Below, in pieces: positions 32,564 to 55,877 of a stretch of DNA of 64,000 bases. Made by a program: the position numbers and the translations under genes. The stretch comes from Diadema antillarum (lineage: Eukaryota): assembly GCF_040938485.1 (NCBI RefSeq), contig NW_027271376.1:124001-188000 (forward strand), given 5' to 3'. The notes under the pieces were generated by a model. The model worked only from the letters and a program-made list of their open reading frames with translations. It searched no databases and was not told where the DNA came from. Numbering within the stretch: position 1 is the first letter of the stretch; each line of letters starts with the position of its first letter.

Positions 32564-35500
32564 TCATTCTTTGATAGTGGTATCAGCTGTCAAGTCCATG
32601 GCGAGTTCACTGTTAGCGACAGTCACTGTGACCTCGTGGTGACCAGCATCAATTACAAAGTTGCCTTGATCTTCATTTGCCTGATCAACTGCCTGATTGA
32701 TCAAGTTTCCAGAGGTGAGAACCTCCTGGTTGTAGAGGGACGGATCCAACGTGACGTAGGTGATGTTCTCCATGACATCATGATGGCCAATGATGCTACC
32801 CTCTGTGCCTGGCCCCAGAGTACTGGCAGCTACGATGTTTAAGTACCCCTCCGCATCTTTGAGGACTACCGTCTGGACTGTCTCATTGACAACGGTCATG
32901 TCGCCACCCTGTGTAGACGGTGTTGGTGCCTGAGAGTGAAGTCTGGCCTTCCCCTGTTGACCTGTGGTTTGTTGAGTATGTAGAGCAGCAACGTCTCCAC
33001 TACTACCCTGCACATCTCCTTGTGGTGGAGGCTCATTAGTACTGGATGCCGTAGGACGAGCTTTAGACACCCCACACTCTTGTGGGGACGTTTGAGTCCT
33101 GGATGATCTCTTGTCCTGTGATGAGCTTTGTGACATGGCTGTGAGATGATGTTCAACATTGGGGGCAGTGTTGCTCTCCACAGAGAGGACCCTGTTGCCA
33201 CTGATGTTATTGCCTTTGCTTGACACATCATTGCTGACTTGTGTTTGGTATAAGGATCCCTGGGTATCTTCCGTTCGTGTGGGACTTCCTGGACCAATTT
33301 GAACACCACCTTCCACGCTGCTACTGCCATTTACTTCCTTGACTTTTGGGGTCTCAGCATTATTCCTCCTGGCTCTAGAAGACCCCTGTGATCTTTTCTT
33401 AGTCCTATAGGTCACTCCTTCTGACAACTTCTCGAGCGAGTGCAACATATCGCAGAGGAATCTCTCATCTTTCACCAGTGAGACCTGAGAATGGAGCTTG
33501 TCAAGGAGGTCTTTGTTCTTGTTGATAAGTTGCCTGCACTTGGTGGCATTCCTCTTGGGTGTTGAAGATGCCTTTGTACTTTCTGGCTTGACCGAGTCAA
33601 GAGACTTTACAAGGTCGTCATCATCATCTCCTCCCGGAGGATGACGGTGGGAGTCACCGTCATGAAGGACATCATCATCCAAACAGAAGAGGGGATTGTC
33701 TCTGTAGGACTCACAAAGTTGGTCCCACGACCACCCCTCTACATGTCGGAAGATGGCACAAAAGTGTTTGCATGGCAGGAGACATCTAGACCAGTACGAG
33801 CATGAGCAAGACGGGAACTTGTCCTCACTGCCAAAGGAGACCCTGTGGGCCTGAGATTTGTCCCCTCTGACCAAGAACTGGCCGTTTTGTTCAGCCTGGA
33901 TTCCCTCCGCCTTGATACCAGAGGCCATGTTCTTTTCGATGTGCTCTACGATGAGTCTTGGTCTGCTGTGCAGGAAGGCAGGAACGGCTTCACTGTACTT
34001 GAGGTAGCTGCTAGAATAGCGAGCGTTGAATTCAACATACCTAGCATGTAGGAAAAAGGCAAGTGAAATAGATCAAACAGAGTGGGACAAGGTGAAATAC
34101 AGGAAAGAAATCATTTCAAAATAGTTGCACAAAATTGTAAGTTTTGCTTACATGAGGCAAATACTTGATGAAACTTGATAGATATGAACATTCTCTGATC
34201 AAAGATGCAGATCTTGTATGGAAGAAGAAGAAAAAAAAATCTATCTCACATCTGAAAAGATGATGACTTCATGAGTATGCGGAGAAATAATCATGAATCC
34301 ACATGACTTGGCCAGTAAAATGAGTGAACAATAATGCAATGTTTATATAAACCTTTTTACATAATATGGAAAGGTCAAGAATGACCTTCTGAATATTCAG
34401 ATGACATGGTTTAACCACAGGATGAGATACTATGTCTCTGCTTCTATCCTATCTCCTGTTGCCTTCTGGTTACTCTGTTCTTGTTCTTGCTCTTGTTGTT
34501 GTAGACAATGTTGTGTGACATAAATTTGTTCTGCATGACATGGACATATGCTTTGCAATACACTGCACTTCTGTTACGATGAATATGGTTATAACGAAAC
34601 TCTTGTTACAACAAAGCAAAAATTCAGGTCCCAAAATTATTGTCTATATATCGTTGTATACTTCACTGTTTGGTTATAACAAAATTTCAGTATAACAAAA
34701 GAAAACTGCTAGTCCTTAGGACTTCATTATAATGAGAGTCACCTAGAATCCAATTTTCCACTAGTATTTTTTTTTCTCAGCTCATATGCAAAGCCTTACA
34801 AGGAGTCTCAGCCAGAAAAGGGTTCCTGCCAGCCAGCATAACAGGATAACTTACACCTTCAGTAAACTACTCAAGATAGCACTAAAAGCCATTTTCAACA
34901 AGAAGACATCCTATTCACCTAGAGGGCATTAGTAATTGATGGAACTTGTTTTCATTGATTCAGCATTATCCATAGCAGAATGAGAATTGGAGATGACTTG
35001 ATCTCACTTTTGACATGAAGCACAATTATGATGCTGTAATCTCGCAGAGGAAATGTTGTACACATGGGGGTAGGGAGAACTGGAGACAGAGAAATACTAC
35101 AGTGGGAACTGGGAATAAAGAGAACCTTGGACAAGGAAAATTTGATCAATATCAGTTTTTTTTAAACTGAAGTTAAAGGGTGTGTACAGTTCTGGTCGAT
35201 GTGTAGATTTAGCTTTCAACATTTTGCGAGATATTCAGAAACCACTCTATGAGATGTCAAAGACAATGCAGTTCCAAGGGGTATCAAAAGTTTATTCGAT
35301 GAAAGTCGGTTTTGAAATGGCTGAGATATCCAAAAACAAGGTGAAACAAAGAGATCCTAATAAAGTTGGGGCATGTCGCCTTTTATTATTAGCACTTTTT
35401 GGGATATCTCAGCCATTTGAAAACCAATTTTCATCAAATAAACGTTGAATCCTTCTTAAAATTACATGCTCTTTCATATTTCATAAGAGGCTTTTCATTA

Positions 35501-38500
35501 TCTCACTTAGGAATGTTCAAAACATGAATCCTTACCTCAACCAGTACTGAACAGTCCCTTTAAATCTTAAAACAAAAAAATAAAGAATTTCTCTTTAAGA
35601 ACCCCCTGAAAATATCAGGTGTATAGCCCAACAAAAACTCTTTAGACCAAATTCTCTCAGGAGTTGAAAGGTAGAAATCATACGATCCTTACCTCCTGTA
35701 TGCAGCGGGAAAGTGCTTTGTGTAGAGGACTGTGATGACCTCACTCAAGCTACACTCCTTGTACTGGCTGATGTAGTCGCAGCGGAACATCTCGTCTTGC
35801 TGCCGAACGCCCTTGGCTGCATACAGGCTCACCCTGACACTCTCACTCTGAAAGGCAGCTGCCCATCTCTGGGGTTGCAACAAACAAATCAACAGTTATA
35901 CAGATGACAAAGAGAATGTAAGAACCACAGACATATTTTGCATATAAAAACAGAAAATGGTTTCTTATTATTTTGTTCAAGGCAAACTGCCCTTAAGCTC
36001 TTGCTAACAATGCACACATTTGCATCTTCCACTCACTGATTGATTCAAAATATGTTCACTATGATTACTTATAAACTATATACAGAATGTACTTTGCAGT
36101 GTTTTATATTCATGAATTTTGGGAGCCAAAAATATTCAGAAAGTAAGCAACTTGAAAAAATATTGCCTCCTATAACACAAATACATCATCATCATCACCT
36201 ACTAGCACCTGTGCTACCTCTTGGTTCTTTTAGCAACCTCATTGTATACAACATTGCCATATTGTAGCTCTTTTTTAGATTAATAGTTTTAGATTACATA
36301 ATCATTTATATTATAGATTATATTCAATATGTTTTGTTTAGATCGTTAACTACATGTAGTATGTATTAATATTGATGTATAAACATGTATTCAAACTTTC
36401 CTGTACATATGTTGTTGTTATAAATAAACTCAAACTCAAACTTCTAAAAAGTTGGATATTGCAAGCTTTTCTCTTAAGAAGTGATACATCATCTTTCCAT
36501 TCCGTCAATGTGGTTAATGATTGAGAATTCAACCGCTTGCGAAACTGTCTTGCAAGTCCCAATTCGCGATACCAGTAGGCCTACTTGCAAAACATATGCA
36601 GTATGCAGTAGTCGATCCATGTCTGTTCATCCATATTGATGTCTCTTTTTTATACATACTTTATACTTTATAGATACTTTATACATATTTACACATATGT
36701 ATGCTTTATACATAGATATCTATATATATATACATGTGTGTCTGTACCTTATACATATATACCTATAATGTTACATGTGAAGCGTTGTGGTGAAATCAAT
36801 CAGTTCAAGCATGAACTACATATAAATACGAAGAAATACATAGAACCACACTCAATCCAAACTCCTCCTCCAAGCAGACCTTTATCTATCATCTACCTTG
36901 GAACACGAGAGCCAGTAAGAGGAGAAATAATTTGCCACCAGTTCATTCTCTTTCCAGGTAAACATGGAGCGCAGAACCTTGAGGGCGGATGCATGTTCCC
37001 TGTGGGTTGGTGCCATGGCAACACGATGCATGGTCTTGATGATGCGGTTCCTTGTCACTGGGTTGACAACCTCAGAAGATGTCGCCAACCAATCTGTCCA
37101 CATCTTCTCACATCGGCTGACAGAGAATAGAGCAGTGCAGTCTGTGGAAGAGGAGTAATACTACTTTCAGCTCTTAAATGGCATTAGAGATACCCCCCCC
37201 CCATTATGATACAATCACATTACCACATGAGGCATAAAAAAGGTTGCTCCTAAATTACCATTATTCACAACATGATATGGCACCAATTGTACATGTACTT
37301 GGAAGTCAAGCCAGTTATACAAAGCAGTCTTCACGCATCAATAACCACCACACTTAACCAAATTTGTGAAATCCAAAAATCAATATTAAATATCAGTGAT
37401 TTTTATTTTCACTGGAAAATGTAAAGAAAGTGCCATGCCTCTCGACTTCGTCTCGGGGCATAGCACTGTTGAGAAATCACCTCCGTGCATATAGGTTTAC
37501 CATCTCCCTCTGAAGCAGTCGATATTTGTATACTATCCCCTCTCCTTCCCCTCCCTCTACAAAGAGAGAGAGAGAAAAAAAAAAAAAACGACATGAAAAA
37601 GAGAGAATACTTTACCTGGCAGAGCAGTTTTCACGGCCTCAATCTCTGGGTCAAAGTAGTCAACCAGAAAAGCGGCAGGTTTCCACATTGGATTCCATCG
37701 CATGAAGATGCGAAGGGCCTCAGCTATATCCTCCGCCGTGTCACTGTGGGACACAAAGAAGCCGACAACCACATAGCCAGCGTTGGTTCTGACTGACAGG
37801 AGGAAGAGGGGTAAGGGGTAGCCAGCACTCCGGTAGACTGCATCCAGCACTGTGACCGTTGTGCCATATTTGTTGAGGAGGCGCTGCTGCCAGCATGTCT
37901 GGCTGCAGAATAAGAATTTGCCTGATTCGGGTGCTGTTAGGAGCAGAATATAACATGAAAATGAAATAGATTTACCAATTATTCCATATAGCCAATACAT
38001 GCAAAGTCATGGAAAATTATGGTATCATCATTGGCAAAATTTACTCCTTCAACTTTGGGTTTGATAGAAAGATCTTTACGAAGTAAAAAAAGTCATACAA
38101 TCCAAGGAAACTTTACAGATTACAAGTTCATAAACTTCATACATTTCTGGGCCTTCAAAGCACCAGTTAAATCATTAACCCGCTGAGGGCAGACTGATTT
38201 TGCTACAACCTGCATTTCCCATATAGACCCCTGCCCGAGTATACTCGGGACTCGTCCTCAACGGGGTAACATATCCTGTGTCCATAGCAAACCAGTACCT
38301 GCTTTGAGTGGCCGGTACTCAAAGAAGTCACCATGGGCACTCTCCCATGACTTGACCAGCATGGACATGTTGCCTTGGTCCACCTTGGTGTGGATTTCCT
38401 TCTTGGCCTTCTGCACTGCATGCCGAATATCCACATCTGTCGGGTAATAGCGCCGCCGCGTCCTGTGCGGTTGCTCTGACGAGTGGAAGAGCTCGCTCTG

Positions 38501-41500
38501 CACGTACTCTTCCAGGTGTCGCCTGATTTCCGGCACCCGGACAATCCCCCTGGCGGTGAGCTCAACGATCTTGTGGAGAATCCTGGGGTCAACTGCTTCC
38601 CTGAGTCCTGCAGCCTAAGGCAGGATGGTATGGCATGTCAGCATGGGGGAGTTGCTAGTCATAGGTATTGTTAGTAATCCCTCACACTAACTTTTGATTA
38701 GGTATCCTAGAATAGTTGTAATACATCGCTTTGGATAGCAATCGATGGCAAACGTGTGTGCTTCATCAGGCCCCCAGGATGGCTATAATTTGGAAAAGAA
38801 AAATGGCATATGGCAGGTTGTAACTTTTTGGAGGGGGGCCTGAGGTTAAAACAAAGCATGCACATCTTACTGCTGAGTGTGCAACTGATTTACATGCATT
38901 GGTAGCTCATTTGCAATATATTACACCAAAACAATACTGTCTTTCCATCATCCCTGCTACATATTCCATATTGAAATATGATTTTCTTGATGCACGTTTG
39001 GTTGCAGCTTCCATCTCACAGATTCCAGAATGTATATGCCAATGAAAACTCTTGGTTTTCCCTTGAAGGACATGTATCCTAACAAAGAAAAGTCCCTAGA
39101 TGTAAGTGCTTTCTAAAAAGGCAGCAAGAAACTGACAATTTATTCTAGTCCCTGATGTGCCAGCTCACTAAATTTAAAAGAGTAACTCATGTCAGAGAGC
39201 AAGAATGTAGACCATCATCCAAATAAGTGAAAATACAACTTTTACATTTCCTCTCCTGATGGCACAATTAAAACAACAGAACAACTGGAAAAACAGCAAG
39301 CATGCAAATCAAAACATCCAACACTTGATTTCACCACTTGGCATAAGCCATGATATTGGAGGATCAAACTAAGTGGAACTGCATGCAACTTGGATATTCT
39401 GGTAGCAAAAAGCTGGGATATTCAGGCTGGTGTGACTCACAATGTTATTGACAGGATGCCCAACGTGTGAAGATAGTGGAGGAAGACTGACGTAGAAGAG
39501 GGTCTCTGTCTGGATGGAATCAGCCCCGAGTTCAAACTCCTCCCTCAGACGTTTCTTGGCCATCACACGGGAGTGTCCCGAAGGCACTGGTTCACTCACC
39601 TGACAATTACATTCATTCAAGGAGAATATTCTGCTGAATTTGGGTCATCACACTTACAGAGACTCCAATCCCAAACATCTCTCAAACTGGAGATTCTCCT
39701 GCCTGGAGCCCTCTAGCAAACTGGAGACTATGATCGCATGAACATGCGCAAGGCATCATATACATGAAGCATAATGTCCCTTGCATCCAGGGTCTAACTC
39801 TTGGGTTATGAATGCTTTCTGTCACTATCTTGAATTTAGCTTTAACATAAAGTTGGGCTGGATAAAGCTAACTTCTAAGCAAACAAAATACATTTTAAGT
39901 GGGAGATACACACTTATAGTGGGTGAAACTTAAGCAAGAGAGGGGGAGATTTTGCACAGATGGCCTCAGAGGGGAAGATTTTGGATGAAAGCGAGAGAGT
40001 TGGAGCCCTTGCAACAATATCATTTATGCTTACAAATCTGGGCGGAAATTATTACAAGAACACTATCAATGATTATTACCTATACGAGGGAGTTTTGCGA
40101 GGCGATTACAGTTGGTATTTTGCAGGGTCGGGAGTTCAGCAGGTGACATTAGAGCATATCACGAGCATCCGGGGTTTTACATCAACAGTGGACTCCTGTT
40201 ATAACGAAATCCTCGGGACCTGCAGTTTTCTTTCGTTATATCGGAATTTTATTATAACTGAACAAATAAACAATAGAAATACATAGAGTGGATGACATTG
40301 CAGCCCAAATTTTTACTTCGTTATAACCAGAATTTTGTTATAACCGTGTTCGTTATAATAGGAGTGCACTGTAAAACAGGGAGGTGGGAAGAGAAGGAGT
40401 GGAATCTCTCTTCCCACCTCCCTGCTTTACATGTAAACATTCCGATCGACCACGAAGAGAAAACATTCAAGGAGGTCACTGCGTGTCGATTACACGCACT
40501 GCAGAAGAACGCCGATAAATCAACTCATACAAGGTCGACCACTTCCAGCAGCACTGCGCGTCAAACAATGATTAGTCCATTTGTGCTCAATAACTGCACA
40601 GTGACCATCAGTTATTACAACTCTCCAAATTGAAACAGAAGCAAAAATAAAGTGTAAAAGCGTTCAGATGTTTGAAGTTTGCCTGTTACAACTATATATG
40701 TATCTTTGAAGTTGGAGTTGAATGATATAAATTGATGTTTTTCAATTATTCGACATCTTGGCGATAATCTACAGGTAGTCAAATGTGGCTTGATCTATAT
40801 CATAGTGTATAGCCGTATTCACATATTTTCCTAATTTACCTAGGGGATAGGTAATAATTATGATATTGACTGGCCTTGAGGGAGATACCAGAAAATATTC
40901 TTTCATATTATCGTCAATATTATATAACTATTCATGTTAGTGAGAATGAGAAGAGTATACAATACAAAGCGAATTCTTTAATGAAATGCAAATGTTTGCT
41001 GATATTGCAAAATTTCTGAGAATGCAATCTTTTTTGTTCAATCTACCTGAAAGTGATTAATAAAAGAGACCAAAAATCAAAATACTAGTACATAGAGAAG
41101 TGCACCAATAAGGAGAAAAAATTTTGAGAAGCTGTATCTGAAAAAATTTGTTGTCTAACTTTAGCAAAGTGCACAAAAGAGTACTATTCCACAAGTCAGA
41201 TATATCCTCCTCGAGCAGTACTGGGTATATTCCTTGTTAATGTGGAAAGACATCTGGAAAATATTGCTGAACTCTCTTCATGATTTTATGCTTACTTTCT
41301 TTGATCATATTGAGAAAAGTGTTAAAGAAGTAACCCTGAGGCTAATACAGTATATTGAGAAAAATGTGTGAATGTTAATTACCTCAATTCTATGTGTTGG
41401 AAATCTGAGGATCTGTACCACATATATGCTTGCAGGGCAGTCCATTTTCTTCGTATCTTGGACAAGTTTTCTCCTCTTCTTAGGAACTGCGTCATTTGAT

Positions 41501-44500
41501 GCATCTTCTGCCTTCATCGATCAATAACCATTTGAGGGGAAAAACAATATATGATCAATGAGTTACATGAACACACAAGACATAAAATGCTTTAGGGTTT
41601 GGTTACATGAGAAACATTTATAGATGATGACTGGCGGGGGAGGGAACATACCGAATGTTACACCCGAAGGGTTTGAAATGCTATTGAGGGAGGTTATAAG
41701 TCCCGAGACGAAGTCGAGGGACTTATTGCCTCCCGAAATAGCATTTCAAACCCTGAGGGTGGAACGTTTGGTACATGTTCCCGACAACAAAAGTCATCAT
41801 CTGTTATATTATATGAGTTAGTCAAATACATCAAATACGTCAACGTCAACCACCCAGCACAACGCGGTTAACGCCCTCGATCGCTCGCTCGCACAGAGCC
41901 AAATTCACTGTGCGCGCGCGATAGGCCTTCTGTCATTTGTTACGTGAAAATGTTTTCCCATGGGATTGTGAATGTTCGCCCATGGGCGAGCATTAAACGA
42001 ATGTACCTCCATCACGTGACTGTGTTTAGCCAATCACTAACCGGTATTTGACTAACCCATTTAATATAATTATTATAGAATTTGTATGTACAATGTATTT
42101 TAAAAGATGAATGCTACAATGTGCATAGATGGGAAAAATCTTGTGGAAGGTTTTTATATGTACACTGAACACATAGGTCTCTAGCTTCAGGCCATTTCAG
42201 AGACATGTCATCAAAACTAGCATCAAATCATGAAAACATTTTAATAATAACCTGATAGAGTCATACAAATGTGTATTACGTCATGTATGCATCATCATCT
42301 GAACATACACAGCGTACTAGCACCAGTAGTGGTGATATCAAAACCTGCCATGTCAGGATTCATTCAATACAACTGTAGGATTGCTGTAAAAAAAGAGGAA
42401 AGATTATAACATCTTTGCTTACCTTTCTCTTTGCTTTTGCCTTTTCATTGCGGTCTCTTCCCTGATGGCAGATATAGACATGGCGGTGCATGTAGAAGAA
42501 TGGAGTGCCATCACACTCAATCTTGGGTGATTGGCCTCCATAGTCTAGCCTCCATCGCAGGAAATTCTTGCCAGGGTCAGGAATAGATACTGAAGTAAGA
42601 AAATGGGTATTCAAATGAAGCATGAATACATTAGACTATATATTTCTGATAAAAATTAGTCCAGTTTTGATCAAGCTGGAGGGAAGTCGGCAAATGTGCT
42701 TATGGTTAACTGCACATTACTATTTGTTCTACAGACACTACAATAACATTTTGTAGCACAGCAACATTGCCTTTTTTAAGCAGCCATTGGCATTGGCATA
42801 GCAAAGCTCCAAGTCAAATTTAATCTAAAATTACAAATGACCTAACCTATACTAACGCTAAATTTGAATTTAAAACTGTCAAAAAGAGAGTTCATTCATG
42901 ATCACTACCATATATATGTGGTGAAAGGAATGGATATCGGAATCTGGGCATGCTATATAAATATGGTAGGTGATATATTATAAAGATATCGCATCACGAG
43001 TTACGGCACAACTTATGTTAGCTCTAACGAGTTTTACAAGCGAGGTGTTCGCCAATGAAACTCAATTGTCCACATACAACCAACGTTAATGGTGTTGACT
43101 AACAACAACTTTAACGAGTGGGACTGTATCAGGCCATTACCGTTGAGTAAAACGCACTGCTAACTAAGTTTGCAATTCTGCTGCAACAAGAGCATTCAGC
43201 ACTGACCTGTTGGTTTTCCAAAATCCTTATCTTTGTGGACTGTAATAAATTTCACTCTGTATCGCTCTTCGTGCTCTGAAATGCATTTGTACACGTCCTC
43301 GATACTGCGAAATTTCACAGTGATGCTCGACTTCGATGCCATGGTAGCGGCGGCCCAGGCATCCTGGCCTCTCGTCGAATGGTATCGCATCGCATGCATG
43401 CACATCGGGCATTCGCACCCGGACCCTCGACCCTGGGAGAATGATGATGATGATGCTGAGGAGATGGAGTTGAGAGCAGTTAAAATGAAGTCTGAAAAGA
43501 AAGAGTGCAATTTTATAGGCACAACAGTGAAAATTTTATCCAAATCAGATAAAGTTAGGGAAATATATGAAACTGTTAAGTTTCGCTAATTTTGTTACAC
43601 AGTTAAAACAGTAGATTTGAATATGTAAATAAAAAAAATGAGTGAATTGCTTCTTGGATTGTGTTAAAAAAAAAATGAAACCCGACGAAAATTTGATTTC
43701 CTGCTCTAAAAGTGTAAAACATGTTATACAATGACATACCCACTGACCTCTACTAGGCCAAAGTGGAGGTCAGTGTATACATGATACCTAGATGAATAAC
43801 GTCAAAATATTGATCAGTCAGATAATATTTATGTTACGATTTGAGACCGGGGCATAATTGCATTTGGACACAAACACACACACACAAACAAAATGAAATT
43901 TCAAAATTTTGTGTACAATCAATGGCTGGATTTGAGGCGGCGATTACATAATCAACTCATACACTGCAATTTGCATACCGCTTCTTGAATTAATAATGAT
44001 AATAGGCTGTATACATGTAAAGTCTTAAACACGACAAGACAAAAACACTTCCTGGATCCCTGTGTTCCTGTATTATAGATCATGTCATCATAGTTATATT
44101 TCATCGATGAGAAAGAGAACAAGAGAACTAGGCCTACATATATGATCTCTACAAATAGCACTGCCAAGAGAAAGTGGGTTGCAATTTATTTTCACACCCC
44201 TTCTACGCCAGATTGATTCGGAATTAATCATTATGGTTGTATTTGCAGAGCTGTTGCACCATTAGCACCGTCTGTTTTTTGACAGGCCAAACTATAGGTC
44301 TACCTATCACCACGGTCGCCGTGGTGGAGTTTGACGAGTATATTACGATGTTTTCCTGGGCTTCTGTTCCAATAAAATCGGAATATATGCTCTGCAGGCC
44401 CGTGTAGTTTCATGTGGAAAATAGCACAAGAACACTGCAAATTATAATCTCTCTTCAACATGAATAACTCAATTATCAATCAATCCCACTGATAAGTTAT

Positions 44501-46850: not shown

Positions 46851-47786
46851 ATGAACTCTGCAACAATTACTGTTTCGTGTCGCATTGGATGCGTAACATT
46901 AGTGTCCATTATTGTACTCGCACAGCTAATGAGGCGACGCACGATATCCCAGGGCTGTTTGACAATGAGGATGCGGCCAGATTATCATCTCTACAACCAC
47001 CTGGGGGCAAAGGTCATCTCATCACTCAACCACATCATCGTTCTCGACGACCTGAAATTGATGTTCTGCTGCATCCCACACACCGGCTGTAACTACTGGA
47101 AACACCTCTTTCAATCGTACCGCCTAGATGAACGAGGAGATGTTGAAAGGCAGGCAACAGGGAGAGTGTCGGACATTCGATTGCTGAGCCAGTACGGGAT
47201 TGGAGAGGTTAAACAGAGACTCCTAAACTACTCGTCATTTATCTTCACGCGAAATCCGTTTCACAGACTACTCTCGGCATTCATAACTTCTTTCCGACTA
47301 GACCGCGGCGGTGACGACAAGGAGGAAGTTCGGAGAATTTACAAATCTAAGATTGAAAGGAAATCTGAGTCAGGCGATAGGGCAGCTATAACAAACAAGA
47401 CCTTGGATGCTATATCATTCCCGGAATTTATAGATTTCATATCGCAATCACACAACAAATTCCACAAGAGTGACGAGGCGAACTGGTTGGGAATGTACCA
47501 ACTCTGTCACCTATGTGGCATCGATTATGATTTCGTTGGGAAATACGAAACTTTTGCCGACGATTCGAAAGAGGCTTTCGAGAAATTTGGTCTCCCTGGA
47601 GTGGTCAACGAGTCGGAGATCGAGAGAGAGGAGGAAGACATTAGCGATGTCACCTTACGTCATTATTTCTCTCAACTAAACCCTTACCAGATCGGAAATT
47701 TCACGAAGCGCTTTGTGGCAGATAAGATTTTGTTCGGATACATGACTCCAGATGTAGTCATGCAATATCTGACAGATAGGCATTGA
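46851..47786 (+). CDS. Carbohydrate sulfotransferase-like protein (HNK-1/CHST8-14, Sulfotransfer_2 family), single coding exon, 311 aa
   Basis: Uninterrupted 311-aa ORF. It has an N-terminal hydrophobic type II anchor (IGCVTLVSIIVLAQL), a 5'-PSB-like FCCIPHTGCNYWK, a 3'-PB FTRNPFHRLLSAF, and LCHLCGIDYDFVGKYETF plus D.ILFGY, all typical of this family. Confidence 0.88.
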   Translation: MNSATITVSCRIGCVTLVSIIVLAQLMRRRTISQGCLTMRMRPDYHLYNHLGAKVISSLNHIIVLDDLKLMFCCIPHTGCNYWKHLFQSYRLDERGDVERQATGRVSDIRLLSQYGIGEVKQRLLNYSSFIFTRNPFHRLLSAFITSFRLDRGGDDKEEVRRIYKSKIERKSESGDRAAITNKTLDAISFPEFIDFISQSHNKFHKSDEANWLGMYQLCHLCGIDYDFVGKYETFADDSKEAFEKFGLPGVVNESEIEREEEDISDVTLRHYFSQLNPYQIGNFTKRFVADKILFGYMTPDVVMQYLTDRH

Positions 47787-53900: not shown

Positions 53901-55877
53901 TGGCAATCATTGGTGAGGGCCAAGGAGCCATGTATCAAAGTCAAAATTTGAAATTTTATCTTTTGAGCAAAAACTGGAAAAGTATTCAACGAATTTTTGT
54001 TCTGGTAGAATCACAGATTATAGGAATGATAGGACAAACAGACTAAAGAGTACATAAGATATAATGGAGGTTAGAGGTACAAGTGTAAACCTCAAGATCA
54101 AATTTGAAATGTTCATTAGCATGTGCAAAAACTCGGTTTGTACAAAACATTCAGATTCTGGGTAAAGTAAGGTGAGGATCCACAGGATGACTCCTGCTGG
54201 TCATTTATATTGGCAAAGTAATTTAAGTTGTCTTTTAGGTGATTAGAGTGAGATGTGAAATGTACATAGCTTTGTTAGTATTTGTGATTGTACAAAAGTG
54301 TAGATGTTTATCAAAACTGCTAAGATTTTCACATTATTCAATGTGATAAAACATGGTTGGTGTTGGTGTTTGCTCATGCTATACTGTACCATAGTGCTCT
54401 TCTCGTATTTTGACAGACGTTTTTTTTTTTTTTTTTTTTTTTTGGGGGGGGGTGTTTTGTTTTGTTTGTTTTTTATTATTCATCAAAGTTAGGTTTGTTG
54501 CAAATGCATGTACATTGTTCTCTGTTGAACGAGTTCCATCATATTAGGAATGCAAAGTGATTAGAAAAAGAAGAATAATTGCAGCCCTGAACGAGGGTGC
54601 CTGTATTGAATCTGCTCATAGCTGGTGATTTGGTGGTGGTTTGTAGCATTCATTCATTCATGATGATATCTTTCCTCAAGGGTGAAGACCTTCATCAGTT
54701 CTTGAGGGCGTTTTCCCCCGGCCTGCAGGAATACGTTGAAGCATTGTCCTTCTGTTTCTACCTCAAGGAGGAAAGACTGATTTCAAGGAAAGAAATCGCT
54801 TCAAGATTTATTTTCAGGGAGTGCGACAAAACGAGGGAAACTACGTCAAATGTAAGATGAGCTGTGAGTAATTTCATAAATTTTTCCCTCCAATGAGAAT
54901 CTTTGCCATCTTTACCCATGCTTACATGCATTCTTGGGGGACATTTCCTGCTTTATATGTAGGTCTGCACAGAATTCAGCATTCATTGATCCATCTTTCT
55001 GGAATTTTATTCTGAGCAATCACCTAAAATTTGGGCTCTGTTGTTCAGCTTTTAGACATCTCATTATGTATCATTGCCTGTGTTTGTAGTAAGCTTCAGA
55101 GTATACTATGTAGCAGTGGAGATTGTGTGGAGTATGAAATGCTGGTAATAGAAATTCTTGATTGAATATCGTGTTGATAAATGAATGTCAGGAGACATAA
55201 AGAAAAAGAACATAGCAGACCAACGCCATGTGATAATGTTATATTAATAGGTAGGCGTCTAGTGCAGATTTGAATAAGATTTTTACATGGCATGCACCAA
55301 ATGGACACAAAATGGCAAAGTGACATAGCATCAGACACTCAATAACATAATTATAACCCTGACTGACTTGTTTCCTCATGAATAGGAAGATGAGCAGGCA
55401 GCCTTGAGCCGGACAGAAGACTTGGGTCAGAAAAGTGAGGAAACCACCGATATCAAGCCCTCAGTGTCCTCGAGTACTGCCAGTAATGAATCAGCTGCAG
55501 AAATGGAAGGGGCATCGACGTCCCTAGAACTGCCTCCTCTAGAGTACATGTTGGGACTCGCAGACTTTACTGGGGAGCTGATGAGACTGTGCATCAACAC
55601 CATTGGTGGTGGCGACCTGGAACGACCCTTCCACCTCGTCTCATTCACGAGGGCCATCAATGAGGGTTTCCAGCTCATCGGCAACCTTGCCGGGAGAGAG
55701 ATGGTGCGCAAGTCCTCGGTCATGCGGCAGAGCCTGAAGAAGATGGAGGATGCGTGCTACGTCATCAGGGTCAGGGGGTCGGAGATTCCGCAGCACATGC
55801 TGAAGGATGCCCTCTTCTCGCCTCCGGAGTTTGCCAGCCATGACAGTGACTTCAAGCAGGAGGAGATGGTGAATTGA
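50952..55877 (+). CDS. TSNAX: Translin-associated protein X (TRAX, C3PO nuclease subunit), 6 coding exons, 342 aa
   Basis: Exons 50952-51000, 51931-52036, 52651-52767, 53595-53688, 54681-54851, 55386-55877; phase-consistent, 1029 nt. Motifs: [78 protein letters not shown]. The first exon has an aaaATGg context. Confidence 0.95.

Follow-up and report, generated by a model that had tools for sequence, protein, structure and literature searches.

A Mutator-type transposase core without its catalytic glutamate and CxxH motif in a nine-exon gene of the sea urchin Diadema antillarum

Active transposases of Mutator-like elements (MULEs), such as Muta1 and MuDR, share a CxxH motif and a DDE core in which a conserved Trp lies after the second Asp and before the Glu. 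In Muta1 of Aedes aegypti, Ala at any one of the D, D and E positions abolishes transposition, the His-to-Ala change in CxxH removes 99.5% of it, and W401 matters as well (PMC5225508); the same paper describes the relationship between IS256 and Mutator. Here we analyze a gene on the minus strand (43342-32564) of a 64,000-nucleotide stretch of the Diadema antillarum genome (RefSeq assembly GCF_040938485.1, contig NW_027271376.1, positions 124,001 to 188,000; hereafter the window, whose numbering we use throughout). The encoded protein has a core of this type, including W496, the equivalent of Muta1 W401. In contrast to Muta1 and MuDR, however, it has neither the Glu nor the Cys and His, the locus is without terminal inverted repeats, and the N-terminal region is of the ALS2CR8/CaRF type rather than the FLYWCH type of Muta1.

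MULE-derived transcription factors are known from plants. FHY3/FAR1/FRS and MUSTANG derive from MULEs and combine a zinc-type N-terminal DNA-binding region, a transposase core and a C-terminal SWIM finger, a layout resembling that of the urchin protein, and they act by DNA binding, not transposition (PMC8599713, PMC13306707, PMC3435246). Compared with FHY3/FAR1, the urchin gene would be an independent animal domestication from another MULE lineage, with an ALS2CR8/CaRF-type instead of a FAR1-type N-terminus. We found no open paper on the catalytic residues of FAR1, a point on which PMC8599713 is silent. Vertebrate CaRF (ALS2CR8) and ZSWIM1/ZSWIM3 resemble the urchin protein in belonging to the same Pfam families, PF15299 and PF21056, and in having a SWIM finger. 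CaRF has been reported as a DNA-binding factor. The likeness is one of Pfam families. The urchin proteins form a long-stemmed clade of their own. One fish relative (P0046) is annotated 'Calcium-responsive transcription factor'. ZSWIM1/3 are functionally almost uncharacterized (PMC10236294). A MULE survey reports 'limited evidence' for MULEs in chordates (PMC6446971), and a survey of transposon-derived factors (PMC10027918) counts a small number of FHY3-like genes, in molluscs, sponges and amphioxus. We found no open paper that deals with the ALS2CR8 + MULE + SWIM family or with the urchin gene, and none that connects this family with CaRF or CaRF/ALS2CR8 with transposases.

The Diadema gene has nine coding exons, all separated by GT-AG introns, and its frame is open over 1044 codons (Table 1). 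A word search with its protein (P0002, the source of all residue numbers below) identified it as the public 1044-residue 'uncharacterized protein [Diadema antillarum]', and a local script comparing exon coordinates with that protein found exactly one nine-exon GT-AG model that reproduces it without mismatch. The active-site peptides discussed below are encoded by exons 6, 7 and 8, split by introns with canonical splice sites. In a profile-free search, which returned 1316 relatives, exon 6 matched residues 308-412 of P0002 at 100%; in word searches exon 6 gave no match, and exon 9 gave a single exon-sized ortholog (P0001).

Pfam scans, done exon by exon and then on the public protein, divide the product into an ALS2CR8/CaRF-type N-terminal region, an RNase H-like (MULE) core of the ZSWIM1/3 type and a C-terminal SWIM finger. 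On the whole protein PF15299 scores 130.3 bits, above its gathering cut-off, over residues 51-274 (profile positions 5-234 of 235). The ZSWIM1-3_RNaseH-like family PF21056 scores 29.6 bits over residues 316-416, and 31.9 bits on exon 6 alone, against a cut-off of 27.2; with the C-terminal SWIM ligands, this score places the protein with the ZSWIM1/ZSWIM3 type. The MULE family PF10551, with 18.5 bits on exon 6, falls short of its cut-off of 27.6 and is not listed for the whole protein, although two relatives pass it (P0006, 44.6 bits; P0013, 39.4 bits). The Pfam SWIM score of 16.2-17.3 bits (16.2 for the whole protein) falls below the cut-off of 19.6, yet all four ligands are present.

The original prediction, made from the letters of the DNA, had claimed that the active site is selectively inactivated, with both Asp kept and the CxxH motif and catalytic Glu lost. 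The peptides and codons on which it relied (the Asp in VLDAVY and in FLVDY, the Arg in YAAKGVRQQD) are all as it described them, and the family patterns that it had quoted prove to be real. We compared P0002 with the family in a 32-row core alignment and in a profile alignment of 169 retrieved relatives, counting each site only over the rows that cover it. In the 32 cores the first Asp lies in a consensus LLDATY and the second in FMVDF, where Diadema has D337 and D398. The family CxxH region reads LLCDFHREKAW and aligns without gaps with Diadema LFSVSRCEKMW, which places S419 under the Cys and R422 under the His; this region of the Diadema protein, CTALFSVSRCEKMW, begins at 37139 on the minus strand. 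The catalytic Glu of the family lies in TNNGVERQNE, to which Diadema AAKGVRQQDE aligns with R516 under the Glu, and this column is anchored by G514 (Gly in 31 of 32 rows) and Q518 (Gln in 27 of 32). The flanks W427, W496, SLS, FLP..Y.KY and FL.NRP are conserved across the same cores. The three altered residues thus fall gaplessly in the Cys, His and Glu columns of intact relatives, as the prediction had supposed; P0002 has neither a complete D-D-E triad nor a CxxH motif, and W496 is kept.

The census of the family shows how unusual this combination is. The two Asp are hardly ever lost, even where the Glu is gone, and the Trp is retained almost as consistently (counts in Table 1), whereas the Cys is kept in 87 of 94 relatives and the His in 79 of 88; the Glu is the most often lost site. 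Among the 50 relatives that span all five sites, 36 read DDCHE and nine lack only the Glu or only the His. P0002, which reads DDSRR, is the sole protein of the 50 without three of the sites and the most degenerate of them. Because the triple loss of Cys, His and Glu is confined to P0002, random variation within a poorly defined motif does not account for it. The retention of the Asp pair, on the other hand, calls for no special explanation: as both Asp are kept family-wide, including in members without the Glu, their retention is a general property of the fold. The amphioxus, teleost (si:dkey-31c13.1-like) and frog members, which have 36-41% core identity with the urchin protein, the same domain order and, in frog and amphioxus, matching introns, differ from it in reading D-D-C-H-E.

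An AlphaFold2 model of residues 290-690, built from the 32-row alignment (model numbers are P0002 numbers minus 289), has a mean predicted local distance difference test score (pLDDT) of 87.6 and a predicted template modeling score of 0.86. In this model D337 lies within the first core strand and D398 right behind the fourth, CTALF forms the fifth strand, and SVSR stands at a strand-helix junction with the helical insertion next to it. R516 is the third residue of a helix at the usual place of the catalytic Glu. The closest solved fold is that of the transposase complexes of ISCth4, an IS256-family element (Foldseek E 1e-5, probability 1.00; by VIA, Z 13.7 and a root-mean-square deviation of 4.2 Å over 224 residues), and the next VIA matches, at Z ~9, are RAG1, Hermes, P element transposase and retroviral integrases; a sequence search of the PDB gave no match. 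ISCth4 (PDB 6xgx/6xg8/6xgw) is bacterial, however, 9-14% identical and catalytically intact. As modeled, the core is an IS256/Mutator-type RNase H-like fold, as expected for a core of the Mutator superfamily, and the predicted positions of the five residues are the canonical ones of that fold. The N-terminal 300 residues are predicted with a pLDDT of 86.9. Foldseek found no match for this N-terminal model; a wide VIA search was headed by the DNA-binding domain (WRKY-GCM1) of yeast AFT2, with Z 5.5, and by several DNA-binding domains of the helix-turn-helix type, with Z ~5, all below noise level. Such weak matches are compatible with a predicted DNA-binding module and prove nothing.

Orthologs in two other urchins allow the losses to be put in order. 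With P0002 as the query, a word search returned LOC129264676 of Lytechinus pictus (P0152, 1002 residues), whose identity to P0002 is 67% across residues 200-680. Aligned as a pair, the two proteins agree at D337, D398 and W496, and Lytechinus has a Lys in the Glu column; the CxxH place reads LFCYHRCETLW, with the Cys kept and the His one position nearer (C-Y-H-R in the SVSR columns). A genomic Logan contig of a third urchin (L001) carries the orthologous exons 8 and 9, with the intron at the same position and in the same phase, and again a Lys in the Glu column. Neither ortholog, then, has a normal DDE. Because a basic residue occupies the Glu column in all three urchins, the loss of the Glu predates the split of the lineages and is old and fixed; because Lytechinus still has a Cys and a His, the full loss of CxxH is specific to the Diadema line. 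The computational checks proposed with the prediction (alignment to relatives, a structure model and the state of the orthologs) all come out in favor of selective inactivation, with Glu, Cys and His lost and both Asp kept. Two points need refining: the CxxH loss proves to be restricted to Diadema, and the Asp pair is nothing special in the family. We propose that the Glu would have gone before Diadema and Lytechinus separated, and that the CxxH motif would have decayed later, in the Diadema line. The separation of Diadema from the camarodont urchins belongs to early euechinoid history, roughly 200 million years ago or even earlier.

The protein has nevertheless not been free to drift, as was also claimed from the sequence. 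Between Diadema and Lytechinus, identity is 73% in the ALS2CR8 region and 75% in strands 1-5, 50% in the helical insertion, 55% in exon 8, 68% in the SWIM region and 26% in the tail. Between the window and the third urchin the proportion of synonymous differences (pS) is 0.79-0.85; because these sites are saturated, the synonymous substitution rate is not estimable and only pS and its nonsynonymous counterpart (pN) are given. For pN, exon 8 gives 0.26, the opening 135 codons of exon 9 give 0.19 and the tail gives 0.47. Low core pN (0.19-0.26) against saturated pS points to purifying selection, and by this comparison the core is clearly constrained. A maximum-likelihood tree joins the two urchin proteins as sisters with 100% support, on a long stem (0.94 changes per column), and places them among amphioxus, fish and frog members in a clade supported at 99%.

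We next consider whether the locus is a host gene or a copy of a transposon. A scan of the window found no inverted repeats bounding the gene, only small intronic palindromes and dispersed intron repeats, and tblastn of P0002 found one gene copy in the window. Each of the exon positions listed shows a single contig per run and background depth (which is not the same as copy number), both in an independent run of the same species and in a close relative; in the same contig sets the intron repeats reach summed depths of thousands to millions. The locus, including its introns, is present in contigs of the close relative. Of the anatomy of a mobile element, namely terminal inverted repeats, a target-site duplication and several copies, nothing was found at the locus. 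Its ordinary neighboring genes, the lack of flanking inverted repeats and the one copy in the window all speak against a transposon copy.

Based on these findings, we consider it probable that this is a single-copy echinoid host gene domesticated from a MULE transposase of the ALS2CR8/CaRF, ZSWIM1/3-type core and SWIM family, acting most likely as a DNA-binding regulator or scaffold. Because Muta1 requires D, D, E and the CxxH His, P0002 is dead as a transposase by that standard, and by analogy it would no longer be able to cut or join DNA. Selection would keep the N-terminal region, RNase H strands 1-5 and the SWIM finger. Constraint is strongest on the N-terminal region, on the first half of the RNase H fold and on the SWIM finger, which makes a sequence-specific DNA-binding regulator or scaffold the likeliest role. 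The protein would then act like the MULE-derived plant FHY3/FAR1 proteins and vertebrate CaRF, as a DNA-binding regulator or an assembly scaffold. We therefore share, as something we infer, the original prediction's statements that 'activity is gone' and that the protein is a 'chromatin/transcription scaffold'.

Several points weigh against domestication as we propose it. Splice junctions and expression are presumed on the basis of the public annotation and canonical splice sites. A DNA-binding role of the N-terminal region would follow by family name only, the fold matches being weak. Orthology with Lytechinus, as judged from sequence, rests on the tree, on identity and on one shared intron. 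An acidic residue at position 520, together with the strictly kept D337 and D398, would make a non-canonical metal site conceivable in the model. The introns, moreover, were considered as proof of domestication and rejected, their positions being common to frog and amphioxus members. The intron at 412/413 is shared by urchin, frog and amphioxus and that at 494/495 by urchin and frog, and the last core junction falls in the same window, ~552/553, in urchin, frog and amphioxus (the urchin junctions are 37616/37141, 36897/35868 and 35693/34040). Because the core introns also occur in a multi-copy frog element, they are ancestral to the family and no mark of domestication.

It is also possible, though we regard it as unlikely, that the protein is a trans-dominant repressor: a dead transposase that would bind the ends of related active MULEs, multimerize and block their transposition, and that would be kept as a host defense. 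Conservation is highest in the DNA-binding region, in strands 1-5 and in the SWIM finger, which would fit such a role, as would the family's tendency to lose the Glu more often than other sites and the existence of seemingly very young mobile copies with D-D-C-H-E (the frog units described below, 99.9% identical). An intact family member was not seen in the 64-kb window, however, and conservation over so deep a split would require a target element that is permanently present; we know of no intact family member in urchins.

A bolder proposal, which we hold to be doubtful, gives the basic residue itself a function. The Arg of Diadema and the Lys of the two other urchins in the Glu column, maintained across a very deep split next to the strictly conserved Asp pair, would be a selected change and not plain decay, in which a fixed positive charge replaces the metal in the Asp pocket, yielding a metal-independent clamp for a DNA phosphate or end, and the family would be the source of CaRF and ZSWIM1/3 by repeated and independent disarming of the Glu. 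If this were true, the old catalytic cleft would read a transposon-end-like or structured DNA site.

Quite improbable, in our view, is a nuclease or recombinase with a non-canonical site, in which D337 and D398 would bind metal together with E520 (or D519), or in which the Arg or Lys would partly replace a metal. Both Asp are strictly conserved, position 520 is acidic in all three urchins (Glu in Diadema, Asp in the other two), and in the model it lies one helical turn (i+4) beyond R516 in the same helix. E520 aligns, however, with the second, non-catalytic Glu of the ERQNE of the closest relatives, in a column that holds E in 10, K in 8, Q in 5 and R in 3 rows; because this column is variable, it is no catalytic position, and a substitute Glu in QQDEMF, which might have overturned the predicted loss, is not supported. 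In Muta1 either the Glu-to-Ala change or the loss of the CxxH His is by itself enough to abolish activity (PMC5225508), and the retention of the Asp pair in members without the Glu suggests a structural role for it.

That the locus is a decaying transposon copy or pseudogene without host function, its open frame being luck or an annotation artefact, is very unlikely. Three of five key residues are gone, the worst case in the family; the Pfam MULE and SWIM scores lie under their cut-offs; and no RNA run contained the stretch, the four runs compared being DNA contigs. Against these stand 1044 open codons in nine exons with GT-AG introns throughout, orthologs in two urchins with 63-75% core protein identity although synonymous change is saturated, four intact SWIM ligands, the lack of flanking inverted repeats and a single contig per run at the listed exon positions. 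Assembly or sequencing errors of one genome as the source of the Arg codon and of SVSR are hardly credible, given that a same-species run from another study and the close relative cover both places, that the only change inside the former CxxH codons among the variants listed is a synonymous one (37113 T>C, in the R422 codon), and that orthologs have Lys and none has Glu.

Catalytically dead domesticated transposases are already well known, and the urchin gene is a good but not unprecedented example. What it offers is a clean, datable animal case of stepwise disarming, in which the Glu would have been lost first, in the common ancestor of these distant urchins, and the Cys and His later, in one lineage, while selection would have acted throughout on both Asp, on the fold, on the DNA-binding region and on the SWIM finger. 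The case also connects the CaRF and ZSWIM1/3 domains of vertebrates, about whose origin and function little is understood, with a deuterostome MULE family that has received little description. Amphioxus, fishes and frogs have intact members of this family, and in a poison frog it is apparently still amplifying. What such a protein binds and does could be tested in sea-urchin embryos, a tractable system.

The poison frog in question, Phyllobates terribilis (GCA_046119375.1; L002-L005, e.g. L002:1536-29686), has a 993-residue member with intact D-D-C-H-E and with ALS2CR8, MULE, SWIM and weak PHD matches. It lies in units of more than 28 kb that are 99.93-99.95% identical and occupy 10 or more sites in the genome. 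On the left the units end sharply, ~2.5 kb upstream of the gene, and they have the appearance of either a giant MULE-type element of very young age or a large duplication of recent date. In the teleosts Coregonus (P0084) and Polymixia (P0120/P0170) the members share a long stem (0.83), the second Asp has become Glu and the Cys and His are lost (S/N..L), whereas the catalytic Glu is kept. Judged from these sequences, this decay is a parallel case, with a pattern opposite to that of the urchin gene.

Two neighboring genes were identified in the window, both on the plus strand: a single-exon Sulfotransfer_2 gene at 46851-47786 (PF03567, E 3.9e-31), arranged head-to-head with the MULE-derived gene, whose start codon is ~3.5 kb away, and, at 55404-55877, a gene of the translin family, represented by one exon (PF01997, E 2.6e-26). 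Positions of the coding exons and of the residues discussed above are collected in Table 1. In exon 4, H193 and H196 are conserved at 90% or more in the family alignment.

Table 1. Features of the Diadema antillarum gene in the window, in the order of the coding sequence.
Feature	Position	Strand	Evidence
Coding exon 1 (Met1 to ~residue 45)	43207..43342	-	GT-AG model equal to P0002; tblastn of P0002
Coding exon 2, ALS2CR8/CaRF-type region begins	42411..42589	-	PF15299 on piece, E 8.8e-6; model
Coding exon 3, ALS2CR8 region including Cys of DCPA	41383..41511	-	PF15299, E 6.4e-7; model
Coding exon 4, ALS2CR8 region including nearly invariant H193 and H196	39441..39599	-	PF15299 on piece, E 0.015; model
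Coding exon 5, ALS2CR8 region, C-terminal helical part	38299..38614	-	PF15299, E 5.5e-13; splice sites; model
Coding exon 6, RNase H-like strands 1-4 and both kept Asp	37616..37933	-	PF21056; match to P0002 308-412
D337, first catalytic Asp, kept	37842..37844	-	Asp in 32/32 aligned, 164/166 family; in model strand 44-49
D398, second catalytic Asp, kept	37659..37661	-	Asp in 30/32 aligned, 160/166 family; right after model strand 105-108
Coding exon 7, strand 5, former CxxH site, helical insertion	36897..37141	-	Gene model
S419-V420-S421-R422 in the family C-D-F-H columns (CxxH lost)	37113..37124	-	30 relatives aligned without gaps
Coding exon 8, conserved Trp and former catalytic-Glu helix	35693..35868	-	Model; orthologous exon in L001
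W496, conserved Trp 20 residues ahead of the Glu column, kept	35863..35865	-	Invariant in core alignment; 54/56 family
R516 in the catalytic Glu column (Glu lost)	35803..35805	-	Glu in 26/32 aligned, 45/54 family; model helix 225-234
D519-E520, acidic, one helical turn past R516	35791..35796	-	Alignment column; model
Coding exon 9, core end, SWIM finger, Ser/Gln/Thr-rich fast-evolving tail, stop codon	32564..34040	-	Model; alignment
SWIM zinc finger CxCx9CxH: C631, C633, C643, H645	33764..33808	-	Ligands invariant in 32 relatives

The introns have features of their own. The intron at 412/413 sits exactly between the second Asp and the CxxH motif. Extremely abundant short repeats occupy intron segments at 35050-35650, 38050-38450, 34450-34850, 36050-36450 and 37450-37650, in both species, and one of the intron repeats is palindromic and resembles a miniature inverted-repeat transposable element, with arms at 35248-35336 and 35397-35485. 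In the close relative one contig runs directly from 38176 to 38268, and ~91 bases (38177-38267) of the intron after exon 5 are missing there; a high-copy repeat has loose ends at the same spot, at 38223 and 38269.

At the other end of the gene, the last ~60 residues of the tail (32564-32690, P0002 ~972-1035) are conserved in the three urchins despite the fast evolution of the remainder, with the common pattern NIT.VT ... QEV ... IDxxH..(V/I)TVTVA..EL, and this conserved end may be an interaction motif.

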